Positions 18,631 to 56,745 of a stretch of 64,000 nucleotides of DNA are shown here, in pieces. The position numbers and the translations under genes are program-made. The DNA comes from Pavona decussata (taxonomy: Eukaryota), in assembly GCA_977016875.1 (NCBI GenBank), contig CDRNST010000006.1, positions 4,836,001 through 4,900,000 on the forward strand, read 5' to 3'. The first letter of the stretch is position 1. Every line of letters starts with the position of its first letter. A model generated the notes under the pieces. It made no database searches and had not been told where the DNA came from. It saw only the letters and a program-made list of their open reading frames with translations.

Positions 18631-19967
18631 TTATTATATGGCAAGGTAGTCTTGAGGTAAATCCGCGCATTCTGATTGGTTCTTTCTTGGTCGGGATTTT
18701 ACCATACGGACCGTTTCCGTGGAAACGGTCATAAGCTGTGTATTTTTGTTTAGGATAAGCGGCAAATTTGAAAATTTGCAGCTAAAACTGCGACAAGAAA
18801 ATTTGAAAATACTTTCATTCTTTGCAAAGAAACTACCCAAAAGACTGATTCCAACATGGACGAAAAAGAATATCATTTACAAAGCAAATTTTACCATCCC
18901 AAAGATGTAGAAACCTCTGAAACAGGCATCAGCGAAGGCCACGAAGCCATTGACGATTTCGTTAACAAACAGAGAAGTGAAAACACAAAAGGAAGACGTC
19001 TACTAATATGATCACGCTATTCCGTTTTATTGAAGCTAATGGCTTAAATAGTCAAACAATTGAAAGCCTACCTGCATCCAAGCTTGACCACCTTTCGTCA
19101 ATTTTTTTTATGAACGTACGCAGGAAAAGGTGAATACGAGCCAGCAACGTTTTCCAGTTTTCAGCGCAATATACAGCGATACTTATCTGAGAAGAAATAT
19201 CCATTCAACATACTCAAGGACATGAGTTTGAAAAATCGAGAAGAGTTCTTGCTGCAAGTCACAAGTCACTAATTCACAACTGAACACGACAGAAGAAACA
19301 AGCTGCAAGCCGCTCAGGCGATTGACGAAAACGAAGAAACTGCTCTTTTTGAGGCAGGAGAATTCGGCGACTCCAATACAGTTGCACTTCAAAGAACTGT
19401 GTGGTGGTTTTTATCCCTACACTTGGGTTTCCAAGCCAGAGATGAGAGCGCTGAGTTAATGCTGCTTCTTTTAAAGTTGAATGTGATTTTCACGGCAACC
19501 TTTTTTTGATCCGTACTTTGTGATGGGCTAGTAAAGTTTCGACGAAACCAGTTTTGTGAGTTTCAAAAACAAACCGCAGCTGTTAAGATTTTCGTCAAAT
19601 TCTGCTACAAATCGTTCTTGAAGTCTTTTCTATAATCAACATGATTACATGTAAACGTTCAGTAAATTTGCTTTCAAACTCGTGCTACCGAAGCTTGTTC
19701 TTTCTGGGTTGCTCGCGTCATCAAAAACACGTCACGCGGGAAACCCTTTGAATTCAAGTGACCGGAAGTGCGTTTTTATAAATAAACAAGTTTGCTCCAA
19801 GTGCCATATAATAAACTACTTACTAACCTAGCTTGCTCGAGCCGTACTGGGGAATATTGGCCCTCGGTCGTTTTTGTACAGACCTCACTGCGCTCGGTCC
19901 GCACTGCTACGACCTCGGGCCAATATTCCCCAGTACGGCCCCTGCGCTCGGTTAGTAAGAGGTTAAT
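18631..19967 (+). mobile_element. Crypton-like (DUF3504 tyrosine recombinase) element, internally deleted and degenerate
   Basis: Broken frames similar to the 53.3-55.3 kb copy (EYEPATFSSFQRNIQRYL; GEFGDSNTVALQRTVWWFLSLHLGFQARDES); 13-bp IR at 18631-18643 / 19802-19814; 3' hairpin 19819-19959. Confidence 0.8.
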
Positions 19968-20039
19968 ATTCATTTCCACTCTCTACTGATGGATCCTAAT
20001 GCAGCACCACAGTTTCTTTAGAAACTGTCCCAAAAATAT

Positions 20040-52958: not shown

Positions 52959-53111
52959 NNNNNNNNNNNNNNNNNNNNNNNNNNNNNNNNNNNNNNNNNN
53001 NNNNNNNNNNNNNNNNNNNNNNNNNNNNNNNNNNNNNNNNNNNNNNNNNNNNNNNNNNNNNNNNNNNNNNNNNNNNNNNNNNNNNNNNNNNNNNNNNNNN
53101 NNNNNNNNNNN
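52959..53111. other. Assembly gap (153 N)
   Basis: Run of n. Confidence 1.
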
Positions 53112-53317
53112 CATATCTTATTATATAGCTGAACTGGTCCGCGATGAAAAGGAGCATTTTTATTGGCTCCCTGAGCGGTCCGAATTTTCCTATACAGACC
53201 GCTAAGATGGACCGCTAGCGTTAAGTGTTTCGTGGTTACTGTTTCAGTTTTGACAACGCAAATTAAAAACTGTTTCCAATTAACTTTATATAGTAGGAAC
53301 TGTCGGTTTAAATCGTG

Positions 53318-55326
53318 ATGTCGGACTTTTACTCCGAGAGCACTGACGAAGGAACGAAAACAAGCTCTGAAAACAACAAACTCGACGAAGAAACCAAAGA
53401 AAATTCCGTCGACAAGGCCTCAAAGTACCACGACTTCACTGAGCAACAGCAGGCCAGAAGCACTACAGAGAAAACCAAATCTGACCTTAAAATATGGGGA
53501 AAATTTTGCCACCAACGGAATGAGTTCAGGAAGATTGAGGCAATACCCTGGGTGGAACTTAATCTGCTGCTCTGCGCTTTTTTAAAGATGTAAGAAAGAA
53601 AAATGGCGACGAATACGAACCTGGAACTCTGACTTGCCTGCAACGAAGCATCCAGCGTTATCTTAATACCCACGGGTCACAAGCCAATCTCATTCAAGGT
53701 GACGAATTCAAGCTATCCCGAGAAGTCCTCGGTGCAAAAAGAAAACAGCTTGTCGTGGAGAGAGGGAAAGGCAATCGTCCACAAGCAAGCCGAGAAGTCA
53801 TCGCTGTTGAAGAAGACAAGCTCTTTGCCGAAGGAGAATTTGGCGAGCACAACCCGGTTGCTCTACATCGCACAGTTTGGTGGCTCCTGGCTTTACATTT
53901 TGGCTTTAGAGCAAGAGATGAAAGTAGAAAGCTTCAGTGGGGCGATGTCAGCCTTGAAACTGACCCGGACACAGGCAATGAAATGCTGGTCTGGAAAGCT
54001 GAGAGAGGCTCGAAGACGCGCCAGGGACAGGACAAAGCAAGCGGTCACCGAGCATTTTATTCTACTGCTCAAGCTACTGATAACGAGCACGCTGGGGATT
54101 TTTTTAGTCAAATTCGGCCAAGAAGTTTCTTCTCCTAAGGGTTTTATTGTACGAATCTCAATTTTTGCAGGCGAACAAAACAACGGTTTCTCTGCAACTT
54201 GGCCGATTCGGATTTTTGAATTTTATTTTTTTTAACGGTAAAATGACGTCATCAATTTGGCGCGAAAATTTTTTTTAGAGCTTCGACATGGTCAATCACT
54301 TTTTGCTAAATAAACATACCTTAAGGATTACAAAACTGAAAAAAAGATTTGAAATATCTTAACTGAATCAAAAGTTTTGGGCTTCTGAAGTTTGAATTTT
54401 CCGCCATTTTGTTACTAAAAATAGCCTTAAATTGAACGCTTAACTTCCCATAACTCTTGACTCCAATGAGGTATTCCAAATTTTTTTTCAGATTTGTTAT
54501 TCTCATTTCATGTTGTTTTTTATGTTAGGAACGACTGTGTCGTAGCCCCCCCAAAAAAATTTTCCCACCAAATTGATGACGTCATTTTACCGTAAGAAAA
54601 ATGAAATTAAAAAATCCGAATCGGACAAGTTGTAGAGAAAATATTGGTTTGTCTGATTGCAAAGTTTGAGGTTGCTACCACAAAACCCTAAGGAGGAGAA
54701 ACTTTTTGGCCACATTTGACTAAAAAAATACCCAGCGTGAGCGATGTCCAGTCAAGTACTATAAGCTGTTCAGACGTCACAGGCCCATCGAGATGAATCA
54801 ACCAGAGGCACCATTCTACTTGGCCGGAAAACATCAAAGAAAGGCTACTGATGCAGTGTGGTACAAGAAAAGTCCGCTTGGAAAGAATGAAATCGGGAAG
54901 CTACTCACCAAAGCTGCCCAAAATGCTGGTTTGCCAGGACGCGTTACCAATCACTCGGTTCGAAAGACCTGCATTTCACGATTGCTGGATTCAGATGTTC
55001 CTGGAAATTACGTGGCCCAACTGAGTGGACATCGAAATCTGAAAAGCTTGAATTCATACAAATCGGCTTCCATTCAGCATCAACGAAGAATGTCGTTAGC
55101 CCTCAGTCGCTCATCAACAACCACAAGCGAGCTCCAAGCAGTTGGCAATACACAGGCAACAACTACAATGGAAAGTACCAGTATGGCGACCACAAAAGAA
55201 GCCGGATTGGCTATTTTTCAAGGAGCAAATTTCCAAAACTGCTCGTTTAACATCCAGATTACGAATCATGATCAGCCACCGCTTCACAAGCGCTGAGCCA
55301 TTTTAAGTGACGATGAAGACGATTGA
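53318..55326 (+). pseudogene. DUF3504/ZMYM-QRICH1-KCTD1-like tyrosine recombinase; frameshift at about 53580, split by an insertion
   Basis: Reconstructed frame: VRKKNGDEYEPGTL...LHFGFRARDESRKL...DNE|RCPVKYYK...PFYLA...WYKKSPLGKNEIGKL...TNHSVRKT...SGHRNLKSLNSY (R, HxxR, H, Y catalytic set). Confidence 0.88.
54088..54739. mobile_element. CACTA/EnSpm(CMC)-like MITE inserted in the recombinase ORF
   Basis: CACGCTGGG...CCCAGCGTG long imperfect TIRs, 2-bp TSD AG; removal restores the reading frame. Confidence 0.85.
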
Positions 55327-56065
55327 AATGCAATTTTGACTAATTTTGACTACAAAAGCTTCAATTTCATCTATTTTCATTCATTCCATAGTATAGTTGA
55401 CACTTTTAAACATTCAACACTTTTAAGAAATGCATTTTCTTCGGAATCTCAAATGAGCTAAATTTTCATTTTTCGAACTTTTTCACTTCGATTGACGAGA
55501 CATGTCAAACTTTCGTGTCAAACCTTGACCAATAAAAAGTCGCCTTTTCGTGCGCGAGCCAATCAGAATTATTCCACGTGGTTTGTGAGTACGCGTCAGC
55601 ATGGAGAAGGCTTTCTTGCACTTTTTCTCGCACAACTTGATCATAAACAAGTTTCACGCGGACCAGAAAGCAACAAGCGGGAAAGCCTATATAATAAAAA
55701 CCTTATTGAACTAGCTTGTTCGGTCCGTATTGGGAAAATATTGGTCTCGTCCTTTTTTTGCAAGTTTATGGACCTCGCCTTCGGCGCGGTCCATAAACTT
55801 GCAAAAAAAGGAACTCGACCAATATTTTCCCAATACGGACCTCACGCTAGTTCAATAACATATATGTAATGTAATGTAAAGTAATGTAATATAATATTTA
55901 AGCCTTGTGTAGCTTTCGCTACTTGCAGTCCTGTGTGATTAACTAAAAAAAAAATTGAAAAACATAACATATACATTGATGGATTGATCGATATCTTTCT
56001 GAATTTTTTGGTTTGTAGGTGTTACATTCTTCTCACTATTTCTCGACCGATGCTAAACAAAGTGT

Positions 56066-56069
<4 letters not shown>

Positions 56070-56114
<45 letters not shown>

Positions 56115-56462
56115 GAGATACTCGGGTTTCCTATGGGTGGTGCCTGCTAATACAGGAATATTTTTGCGCGGTTTAAAACTATGTGGAGAAAGCAGAACTT
56201 AGCAAACGCTTTTGGTATCTCGAAAGAAAATTGGGGGTAACCATGCATTTTTCAGAGATAATTAAGCTTCAATTTAGGAAAAAATCCCATACATTGCTTC
56301 ATATTTTGGCGCTTTTTAGAGATATTATTACTTAATTATCTCTGAAAAATGCGTGGCTACCCCCAATTTTCGTTTTGGATTCCAATAGGCCTTCCTAAGA
56401 TCTGCTTTTCCCGCATAGTCGCAAACCGCACAAAAATACTTCGATATTAGTAGGCACCGTCC
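56070..56462. mobile_element. Kolobok-like MITE
   Basis: TTAA TSD; TIR GGACGGTGCCTACTA. Confidence 0.85.
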
Positions 56463-56745
56463 TTAAGCGTGATCTATATGAGAAGTTCATAAGAATAAAA
56501 GGGATTTTGAAGCAAGATCGATTCAACATCTAATTGGTAATTGGTTTCAACAAAATTTGATTGGACTTAACATTTGGGTCAGAAAATGTTGAGCGGAAAT
56601 TGAAACAAATGTTAAAAGCATTTACACACTGACAGGTTTTAATTTGAGTTGACCGGGTTTAGAACTCTATTTTTTTATAGTTAGACTGAATGGTATTTAA
56701 TTAACTGACATCATGAATGTTATTTTTTTTTTCTCTTTACAAAAG

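Follow-up and report, generated by a model that had tools for sequence, protein, structure and literature searches.

The window, a stretch of 64,000 nucleotides of Pavona decussata DNA, contains a mobile element with a tyrosine recombinase (YR) gene and a long imperfect palindrome close to its 3' end. The following features belong to this element or lie within it:

53118-55865, plus strand: CryptonA-type element, window copy, 2748 bp long, with uninterrupted copies measuring about 2104 bp
53118-53128, plus strand: 5' terminal repeat TTATTATATAG (proposed P' arm), invariant in 20 copies
53160-53202, plus strand: 5' subterminal region with an inverted CCAAT box, ATTGG, at 53162-53166, read from the sequence
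53175-53202, plus strand: small imperfect inverted pair GCGGTC..GACCGC with a GGTCCG box, read from the sequence
53318-55296, plus strand: tyrosine recombinase gene (DUF3504, QRICH1, and Phage_integrase domains), identified by Pfam matches
54089-54738, no strand assigned: nested MITE of about 650 bp with terminal inverted repeats of about 55 bp, foreign to the family
55687-55697, plus strand: TIR-R, CTATATAATAA, the inverted copy of the 5' repeat, overlapping an AATAAA at 55693-55698
55698-55702, plus strand: linker AAACC of 5 nt that separates the hairpin from TIR-R and would form one side of an unpaired spacer
55703-55858, plus strand: imperfect palindrome of 156 nt, supported by an inverted-repeat finder, DNA folding, and covariation
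55859-55865, plus strand: tail CATATAT of 7 nt, the last bases of the element (proposed spacer or overlap of the circle-junction site)

In its intact form the element contains a single open reading frame of 451 residues in 2.1 kb, and encodes no reverse transcriptase, RNase H, or methyltransferase, which would point to DIRS or Ngaro. The recombinase matches PF00589 at 4.5e-10 and also PF12012 and PF25561, its catalytic residues R198, K233, H328, R331, H354, and Y363 are invariant in 11 homologues, and its nearest relatives are anthozoan proteins (Actinostola, Acropora, Paramuricea, Oculina) with 45-84% identity. In the window copy, the gene is disrupted by the nested MITE and, near 53590, also by a frameshift, and this copy of the element is dead. 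The MITE, whose terminal inverted repeats read GCTGGGGATTTTTTTAGTCAAATTCGGCC.. and ..GGCCACATTTGACTAAAAAAATACCCAGC, is found in the window copy only, and the homology of the other copies skips from 54088 to 54739. A sample of 20 full copies was taken from the window's own genome (602 Mb, 1180 contigs). Homology among them runs from TTATTATATAG to ..GTTCAATAACATATAT with 95-99% identity over about 2104 bp, and the 451-residue reading frame is intact in 11 of them. An example of a naturally intact recombinase reading frame is L039:1774-3129. The search of this genome with the hairpin and its flanks scored at least 40 places among 622 first-look candidates, and the family is present in dozens to hundreds of copies. 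The element is a young tyrosine-recombinase (Crypton) transposon. Judged by its sequence, it matches the CryptonA elements in size and gene content, the published ones being 1.97-2.29 kb long (PMC3212892). Like animal CryptonA elements it has a single YR gene (DUF3504, QRICH1-like, integrase) in about 2.1 kb, no reverse transcriptase, and short non-autonomous derivatives that retain both ends.

The ends of the element, however, are unlike those of the CryptonA elements described so far. The original prediction had noticed an 11-bp inverted copy of the 5' end in front of the hairpin, and indeed CTATATAATAA (55687-55697) and TTATTATATAG (53118-53128) are exact reverse complements of each other. 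This inverted copy is conserved as ..ATAATAAA in all 20 aligned hairpin loci, and between families the terminal repeat and its inverted copy covary (..ATAG/CTAT.., ..ATGG/CCAT.., ..ACATGGC/GCCATGT.., and ..ACACGAC/GTCGTGT..). The linkers to the hairpin comprise 3-5 nt and are pyrimidine-rich on the gene's strand in all families. The element had been claimed to end in the hairpin, which has to be corrected by the 7-nt tail that lies beyond it. In the 20 copies there is no terminal direct repeat beyond a shared TA. Animal Cryptons have been reported to lack repeats at the ends, be they direct or inverted, and their termini are listed as 'n.d.' (Kojima and Jurka 2011, PMC3212892), and for the Glomhopper elements published in 2026 the repeats are variable and poorly conserved, with no hairpin (PMC13465315). 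In contrast to described CryptonA elements, the present lineage has a terminal repeat of 11-13 bp that recurs inverted in a subterminal position, a conserved hairpin of about 150 nt, and a defined 7-nt tail, and in contrast to Cryptons with direct repeats of 4-6 bp it does not have these. The structure of the termini is a descriptive and not a mechanistic trait, and the lineage is thus filed as a variant. An incomplete search of the full-text literature, which did not include Repbase, returned no description of Crypton terminal repeats, hairpins, or palindromes like these. At the other side of the element, all families have an equivalent of the 5' subterminal region. In loci L052, L053, L056, L057, and L072-75 it consists of TGATTGGCT, the CCAAT box in inverted form, and of a small hairpin in which the box specific to the family is found. 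The CCAAT box and the small 5' hairpin are probably the promoter together with a 5' binding site.

The palindrome at 55703-55858 starts with a 13-bp outer stem and continues with a pyrimidine-rich internal loop, a 25-bp stem, a TC/TC mismatch, a 26-bp stem, a T.C mismatch, and the apex CGCC-TTC-GGCG. A hairpin of about 156 nt had been claimed for this region, and the inverted-repeat finder returned the same arms. Folded as DNA, the top strand reaches a minimum free energy of -71.8 kcal/mol and the bottom strand one of -73.9, compared to -15 +/- 3 kcal/mol for dinucleotide shuffles (z about -20), and none of 200 shuffles folded as well. The minimum-energy fold has the following imperfections on the top strand:

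55716-17, plus strand: TT bulge
55720-21 versus 55842-43, plus strand: TC/TC
55747-48 versus 55815-16, plus strand: TC/TC
55775 versus 55787, plus strand: T.C
55780-82, plus strand: apical loop TTC with a C-G closing pair
55812, plus strand: A bulge, the sole purine imperfection

Counted on the coding strand, the unpaired bases of the window hairpin are 15 pyrimidines and one purine, which agrees, apart from small coordinate shifts, with the pyrimidine imperfections that had been proposed for the top strand. On the bottom strand, for which tandem G.A pairs and a C-GAA-G triloop had been claimed, the equivalent positions read 5'-CGAG/CGAG tandem G.A blocks and C(GAA)G.

The window hairpin is no chance feature. 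All copies of the family have it, with the orientation the same throughout, and it is present in diverged families too. All genomic hairpin copies share one orientation, the reverse strand matching at only about 87%, which corresponds to the palindrome matching itself, and every genomic match runs into Crypton sequence on both sides of the palindrome. The hairpin is an integral part of the element and its unpaired bases are kept on one fixed strand. It could be imagined that an unrelated foldback element or MITE was captured once and has since been hitch-hiking at the 3' end without any function. Palindromic MITEs are common in these genomes, one being nested in the window copy and several others being present in the fetched loci. 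However, the hairpin never occurs away from Crypton ends and does not have a target-site duplication of its own, no free-standing hairpin copies with own target-site duplications were found among the genomic matches to both window families, and compensatory changes have been maintained across families whose proteins are only 45% identical. A passenger of this kind is therefore extremely improbable. A classification as foldback element or MITE was rejected as well, because no target-site duplication was seen and the matches always extend into Crypton sequence. The coral 'CMITE' (PMC2872659) is piggyBac-related and has no relation to the Crypton hairpin.

The window contains a further Crypton whose ends have the same layout:

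18631-19968, plus strand: second Crypton family, diverged, with a decayed open reading frame

Its 5' end reads TTATTATATGG, the inverted copy CCATATAATAA is located at 19804-19814, and a hairpin of about 140 nt (about 19820-19958) is followed by a short tail. Here, the TC/TC loop is placed between stems that are different from those of the first family but mutually complementary. At least 40 genomic copies of the second family have one orientation throughout, and the reverse strand matches at only 75%. The layout is also found 3' of recombinase genes from other assemblies, namely at L052 (64% protein identity) and at L053 from Paramuricea clavata (54%), and in addition at L056 (48%) and L057 (45%). 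A covariance model was built from nine hairpins and searched over 89 sources including 80 coral-metagenome loci encoding relatives. This resulted in about 25 hairpins beside homologous YR genes, with the gene's strand always scoring higher, by 11-72 bits. Common to these about 25 loci are the terminal repeat of 11-13 bp, its inverted copy, the hairpin of about 150 nt, and a short tail. The hairpin is not universal, as about 18 of the 39 metagenome loci with at least 450 nt of downstream sequence gave no match to the covariance model; some of the loci without a match are truncations (L090). L054 and L055, whose proteins have 54% identity and which are near-identical loci, have no hairpin within 2.5 kb. 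At both, a 473-residue homologue is encoded and the adjacent genes are shared. The two could represent haplotigs of one copy that is domesticated or immobile. The palindrome at L051, a multi-exon gene model from Actinostola, is unrelated to the Crypton hairpin.

The alignments show that base pairing in the hairpin is selected for. Of the 52 consensus pairs, 28 have changes on both sides with pairing kept in the nine-sequence alignment, and in the alignment of all matches, which was fitted to the model, such double changes are found for 37 of the 52 pairs. In the model-fitted alignment 94.2% of the cells are paired compared to 76.1% in shuffles. The covariation score, determined from an alignment that was fitted to the model and whose rows include both strands of each palindrome, is 0.313 compared to 0.109 for shuffles and 0.03-0.05 if the partners are slid, and none of 500 shuffles reaches the observed value. 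Pairing could be selected at the RNA level, if the hairpin were needed for transcript 3' end formation or termination after AATAAA, or if it were a source of small RNAs regulating the element. An AATAAA is located 5-10 nt upstream of the hairpin in all families, and tandem G.A pairs are stable in RNA too. However, cleavage 10-30 nt past the AATAAA would already happen in the left arm and leave an mRNA without the hairpin, and the stabilising motifs are on the antisense strand, for which there is no conserved promoter. In addition, G.T pairs are rare in the hairpin stems, which suits DNA better than RNA with its usual G.U-type pairs. A role in RNA thus seems very unlikely.

The imperfections are not randomly distributed between the strands. 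Across 13 family representatives the unpaired bases of the coding strand comprise 276 pyrimidines and 98 purines, and in the six best-preserved representatives the numbers are 123 and 18. TC/TC (or TC/TT) loops are present in ten of the 13 representatives. Four representatives have the apical loop C(TTC)G and two have C(TGC)G, so that wherever the apex is intact the loop is TTC or TGC with C-G closure and the bottom strand reads C(GAA)G or C(GCA)G. These are GNA loops, as had been anticipated for the bottom strand. In some single copies (L105, L115) the basal mismatches have been lost. The bottom strand is the more stable one in 14 of 16 hairpins, by 0.5-6 kcal/mol according to the available DNA parameters, which probably assign too little stability to CGAG blocks and GNA triloops. 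Tandem sheared G:A pairs forming such a CGAG block have been shown by NMR (PMC10085684), and the stability of GNA triloops is known to depend on the C-G closing pair, GCGNAGC being termed a 'mini-hairpin' (PMC3201870, PMC13037366).

Instead of being folded, the palindrome might act solely as duplex, as an array of inverted double-stranded boxes which the recombinase or some host factor binds and which would constitute an accessory, arm-type site in synapsis with the 5' boxes. The TC dinucleotides would then merely confer polarity. Consistent with such a site, boxes like GGTCCGTA in the hairpin arms recur in the 5' subterminal region. The boxes shared by arms and 5' region are GGTCCGTAT in L053, GGTCTGTAC in L057, CAAGATGG in L052, a module of about 30 nt in L056, and GGTCCG in the window element. 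Also, CTATATAATAA-AAACC-TTATTGAACTAG resembles a core site already as a plain duplex. However, the complementarity extends along the whole 70-nt arms including stretches that are wholly different between families, although binding boxes need no complementarity, and there would be no reason for the mismatches to belong to exactly those classes that are stable on one folded strand. We regard a duplex-only function as unlikely.

The position of the crossover can be derived from the junctions. At the right end, the sequence ..AATAA-CATATAT is exact in 18 of the 20 copies and followed by a variable nucleotide, a T (17 of 20), and an A (18 of 20). At the left end, a variable 7-mer directly precedes TTATT, with an A at position -8 (17 of 20) and a T or A at position -9. 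The upstream target TA is displaced by one base from the position that would make it perfectly symmetrical with the arms of the element. CATATAT is not found at attL in any of the 20 copies. The attL 7-mers match CATATAT at 2.55 of 7 positions compared to a background of 2.06 (p about 0.035), and a carry-over of the upstream 7-mer to the 3' flanks of other copies, as in Tn916 or SE elements, was not detected beyond chance-level 6-mer matches. The element always terminates 7 nt past the hairpin in the window family, and for other families the alignment suggests tails of 9-10 nt in which a TA at positions 9-10 is conserved. In a comparison with possible empty sites, at least 10 paralogues of the upstream flank of L044 were found. 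Their homology ends 5-9 nt short of the element, and on the downstream side there is no colinearity.

Some copies have inserted next to other Cryptons. At L031, a 2.1-kb element begins immediately after ..CCATCGAATAA-GATATAT, the end of a 533-bp resident non-autonomous element of a third family with its own matching pair of 11-mers, so that the insertion directly follows the hairpin and 7-nt tail of the resident. Similarly, at L029 a short element begins immediately after ..GGTGAATAA-CACACACACATATAT of another resident hairpin. New copies enter exactly at the right edge of the resident tail and this results in head-to-tail arrays of unlike elements. The tandem junctions have the form P-spacer-P', which may indirectly point to movement through an excised circle. 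A second Crypton hairpin is present at a distance of at most 1.5 kb in 4 of about 40 loci. The non-autonomous Cryptons of about 0.5 kb consist of the 5' repeat, the inverted copy, the hairpin, and the tail (L031, about 1040-1573 in the orientation of its reverse strand, and L029:1046-1203).

As best reading of these data we tentatively propose, while considering it somewhat short of probable, that the hairpin is a conserved cis-acting 3' recombination signal of an anthozoan CryptonA-type lineage and acts as a folded-DNA, attC-like site. The conserved shape together with the mismatches on one strand suggests recombination through folded DNA as in integron cassettes. Excision would join the ends to ..GTTCAATAA | CATATAT | TTATTATATAG.., which can be read as arm, 7-bp spacer, and arm, if arms and spacer are assigned in this way. 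On the bottom strand, the antisense strand of the gene, pairing could then take place between the complements of the 5' repeat and of its copy at 55687-97, thereby closing a rod. This rod would be built from a stem of 11-13 bp, an unpaired spacer (ATATATG versus GGTTT), a 13-bp stem, a bubble, and the long stem held by the CGAG tandem G.A blocks and the C(GNA)G triloop. When the joined ends of the window element are folded, a stem of 11, a bubble of 5x7, a stem of 13, another bubble, and the long stem are obtained, and the analogy with attC is one of geometry only. The rod would thus imitate a two-arm YR core site in the same way as attC does with its R box, unpaired spacer, L box, and variable stem. 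A canonical YR site has arms of 11-13 bp and a spacer of 6-8 bp (PMC3212892).

The recombinase would cut the bottom strand at the border of arm and spacer (tail|TTATT). Tyrosine recombinases cut each strand at the 5' edge of the spacer, and the boundary tail|TTATT would therefore correspond to the cut on the bottom strand. The cut strand might be exchanged with a loosely defined target (..WA-N7-NTA..) and replication would complete the process. If both strands were exchanged between unlike spacers, the element spacer would be expected at the left junction in half of the products, but it is present in none of the 20 copies. The constant tail and the target-derived attL 7-mer fit an exchange of only the bottom strand that is finished by replication. 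With such a single-strand exchange, the tail would stay with the element and the 7-mer of the target would be neither duplicated nor replaced. It would also account for the head-to-tail pile-up at resident 3' ends and the high copy number. Two independent lines, the location of the stabilising motifs and the cut matching the boundary, point to the bottom strand. The idea of the original prediction that recombination may proceed through a folded bottom strand is in part supported by the strand bias, the GNA loops, the covariation, the crossover position, and the one-sided fate of the 7 nt, but the shared boxes may indicate a role as duplex. We know of no source of single-stranded DNA for eukaryotic Cryptons.

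A single-stranded intermediate would not be necessary if the palindrome were extruded as cruciform in a supercoiled double-stranded circle, by which the 11-13-bp repeats would be brought within about 12 bp of each other. Tyrosine recombinases are Holliday-junction enzymes by nature, and the four-way junction might be bound or resolved by the recombinase with the strand bias choosing the strand to be cut. The covariation and asymmetry data apply equally to a cruciform. In the 3' regions of the metagenome contigs L058, L073, L090, and L104 the hairpin breaks off at a mismatch loop or at its apex, with unrelated sequence beyond, which would fit a cruciform, and in L074 the palindrome centre is deleted. 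These contig stops and the deletion could be real breakage of the palindrome, but they could also be assembly artefacts. However, extrusion is poor for imperfect palindromes with several mismatches, and a 12-bp spacer exceeds the length of a YR core site. Altogether, we consider a cruciform quite unlikely. Another function of a folded strand would be that of a single-strand origin, where the hairpin is not a recombination site but primes or directs the complementary-strand synthesis of a single-stranded circular copy. The sso palindromes of rolling-circle plasmids are orientation-specific. The Crypton hairpin resembles them in that it is an imperfect palindrome of similar size, is strictly oriented, and has purine-rich unpaired features on one strand. 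Bacterial YR elements making single-stranded circles also exist (SE elements, PMC9345347). A single-strand origin would, however, explain neither the crossover 7 nt from the hairpin base nor the copy of the terminal repeat directly against the hairpin in every family, and it is hard to give this proposal more than a slight chance.

Returning to the attC-like folded site, the comparison with integrons reveals both common and distinct features. The attC sites are imperfect hairpins of 57-141 nt or more that are recognised by structure (PMC5027507, PMC2727003), and in attC x attI recombination only the bottom strand is exchanged with replication finishing the reaction (PMC5027507). If folded as proposed, the Crypton site would resemble attC in the two stems around an unpaired spacer of about 5-7 nt, the unpaired features and nucleotide skew that mark the bottom strand, the crossover at the border of the basal stem, the head-to-tail arrays, and a presumed single-strand exchange finished by replication. 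In contrast to attC, it does not contain the AAC/GTT triplet (RYYYAAC..GTTRRRY). Instead, the Crypton arms end with AATAA and TTATT and the crossover is at CATATAT|TTATT. Its stem is much longer and has tandem G.A blocks in place of the extrahelical bases. The basal stem would form only after the ends have been joined, and the Crypton site is known from sequence whereas attC is known from biochemistry. Also unlike in integrons, the host is an animal, the recombinase is a DUF3504 Crypton recombinase and not an IntI with attI and Pc, and the mobile unit encodes its own recombinase. It could be possible that anthozoan Cryptons are the eukaryotic counterpart of integron cassettes with a folded bottom-strand att site, exchange of one strand with loosely defined targets or resident 3' ends, replicative spread, and head-to-tail arrays, but we regard this broader claim as doubtful.

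Other mobile elements are similar in single aspects. In bacterial SE elements one strand is moved and the donor is kept (PMC9345347). Like the Cryptons described here they have a YR and imperfect terminal inverted motifs, and they exchange one specific strand, keep the donor, and need replication. Unlike these Cryptons, SE elements are bacterial, have four genes, and do not have a terminal hairpin. Their 6 bp next to attL travel with the circle, whereas the tail at the Crypton attR is constant and the attL 7-mer is derived from the target. The 3' hairpin of Helitrons and the end hairpins of IS200/IS605 are also subterminal, only a few bases away from the 3' end, and read on one strand. However, these hairpins are short (16-20 nt in some cases) and serve HUH nucleases, and the Crypton has neither an HUH nor a helicase gene. 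The element is not a Helitron, which would have a Rep/helicase gene and a short hairpin 10-12 nt from the end, because its sole open reading frame encodes a tyrosine recombinase and its ends are TTATT.. and ..CATATAT instead of 5' TC .. CTRR 3'.

To our knowledge, the mechanism by which Cryptons move has never been shown. The model of Crypton movement by Goodwin et al. has reportedly been untestable in animals as long as the ends were described as featureless. In the present lineage, the ends are defined, the structured site is conserved, and intact recombinase genes are numerous, which makes the question of movement directly testable. According to the folded-site model, the bottom strand of the folded junction should be cleaved 3' of CTATATAATAA. 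If the model is true, a tyrosine recombinase of eukaryotes would for the first time have a recombination site that is a folded single strand, recombination of folded single strands would extend from bacteria (integrons, CTX phage) to animals, and a small system for structure-specific recombination would be available that is self-contained. The vertebrate DUF3504 genes (ZMYM2-4, QRICH1, KCTD1, KIAA1958) derive from Crypton recombinases, and a preference of the ancestral enzyme for structured DNA could have a bearing on what the vertebrate DUF3504 domains bind.

The direct surroundings of the window copy contain some further features. A run of 153 Ns (52959-53111) stops 6 bases before the 5' end and is outside the element, and a short TAATG-like microsatellite at 55866-55895 directly adjoins the 3' end. 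Further downstream, a palindromic repeat of about 400 bp at 56059-56467, which matches its own reverse, recurs upstream of the copy at L040 and is probably another MITE family.
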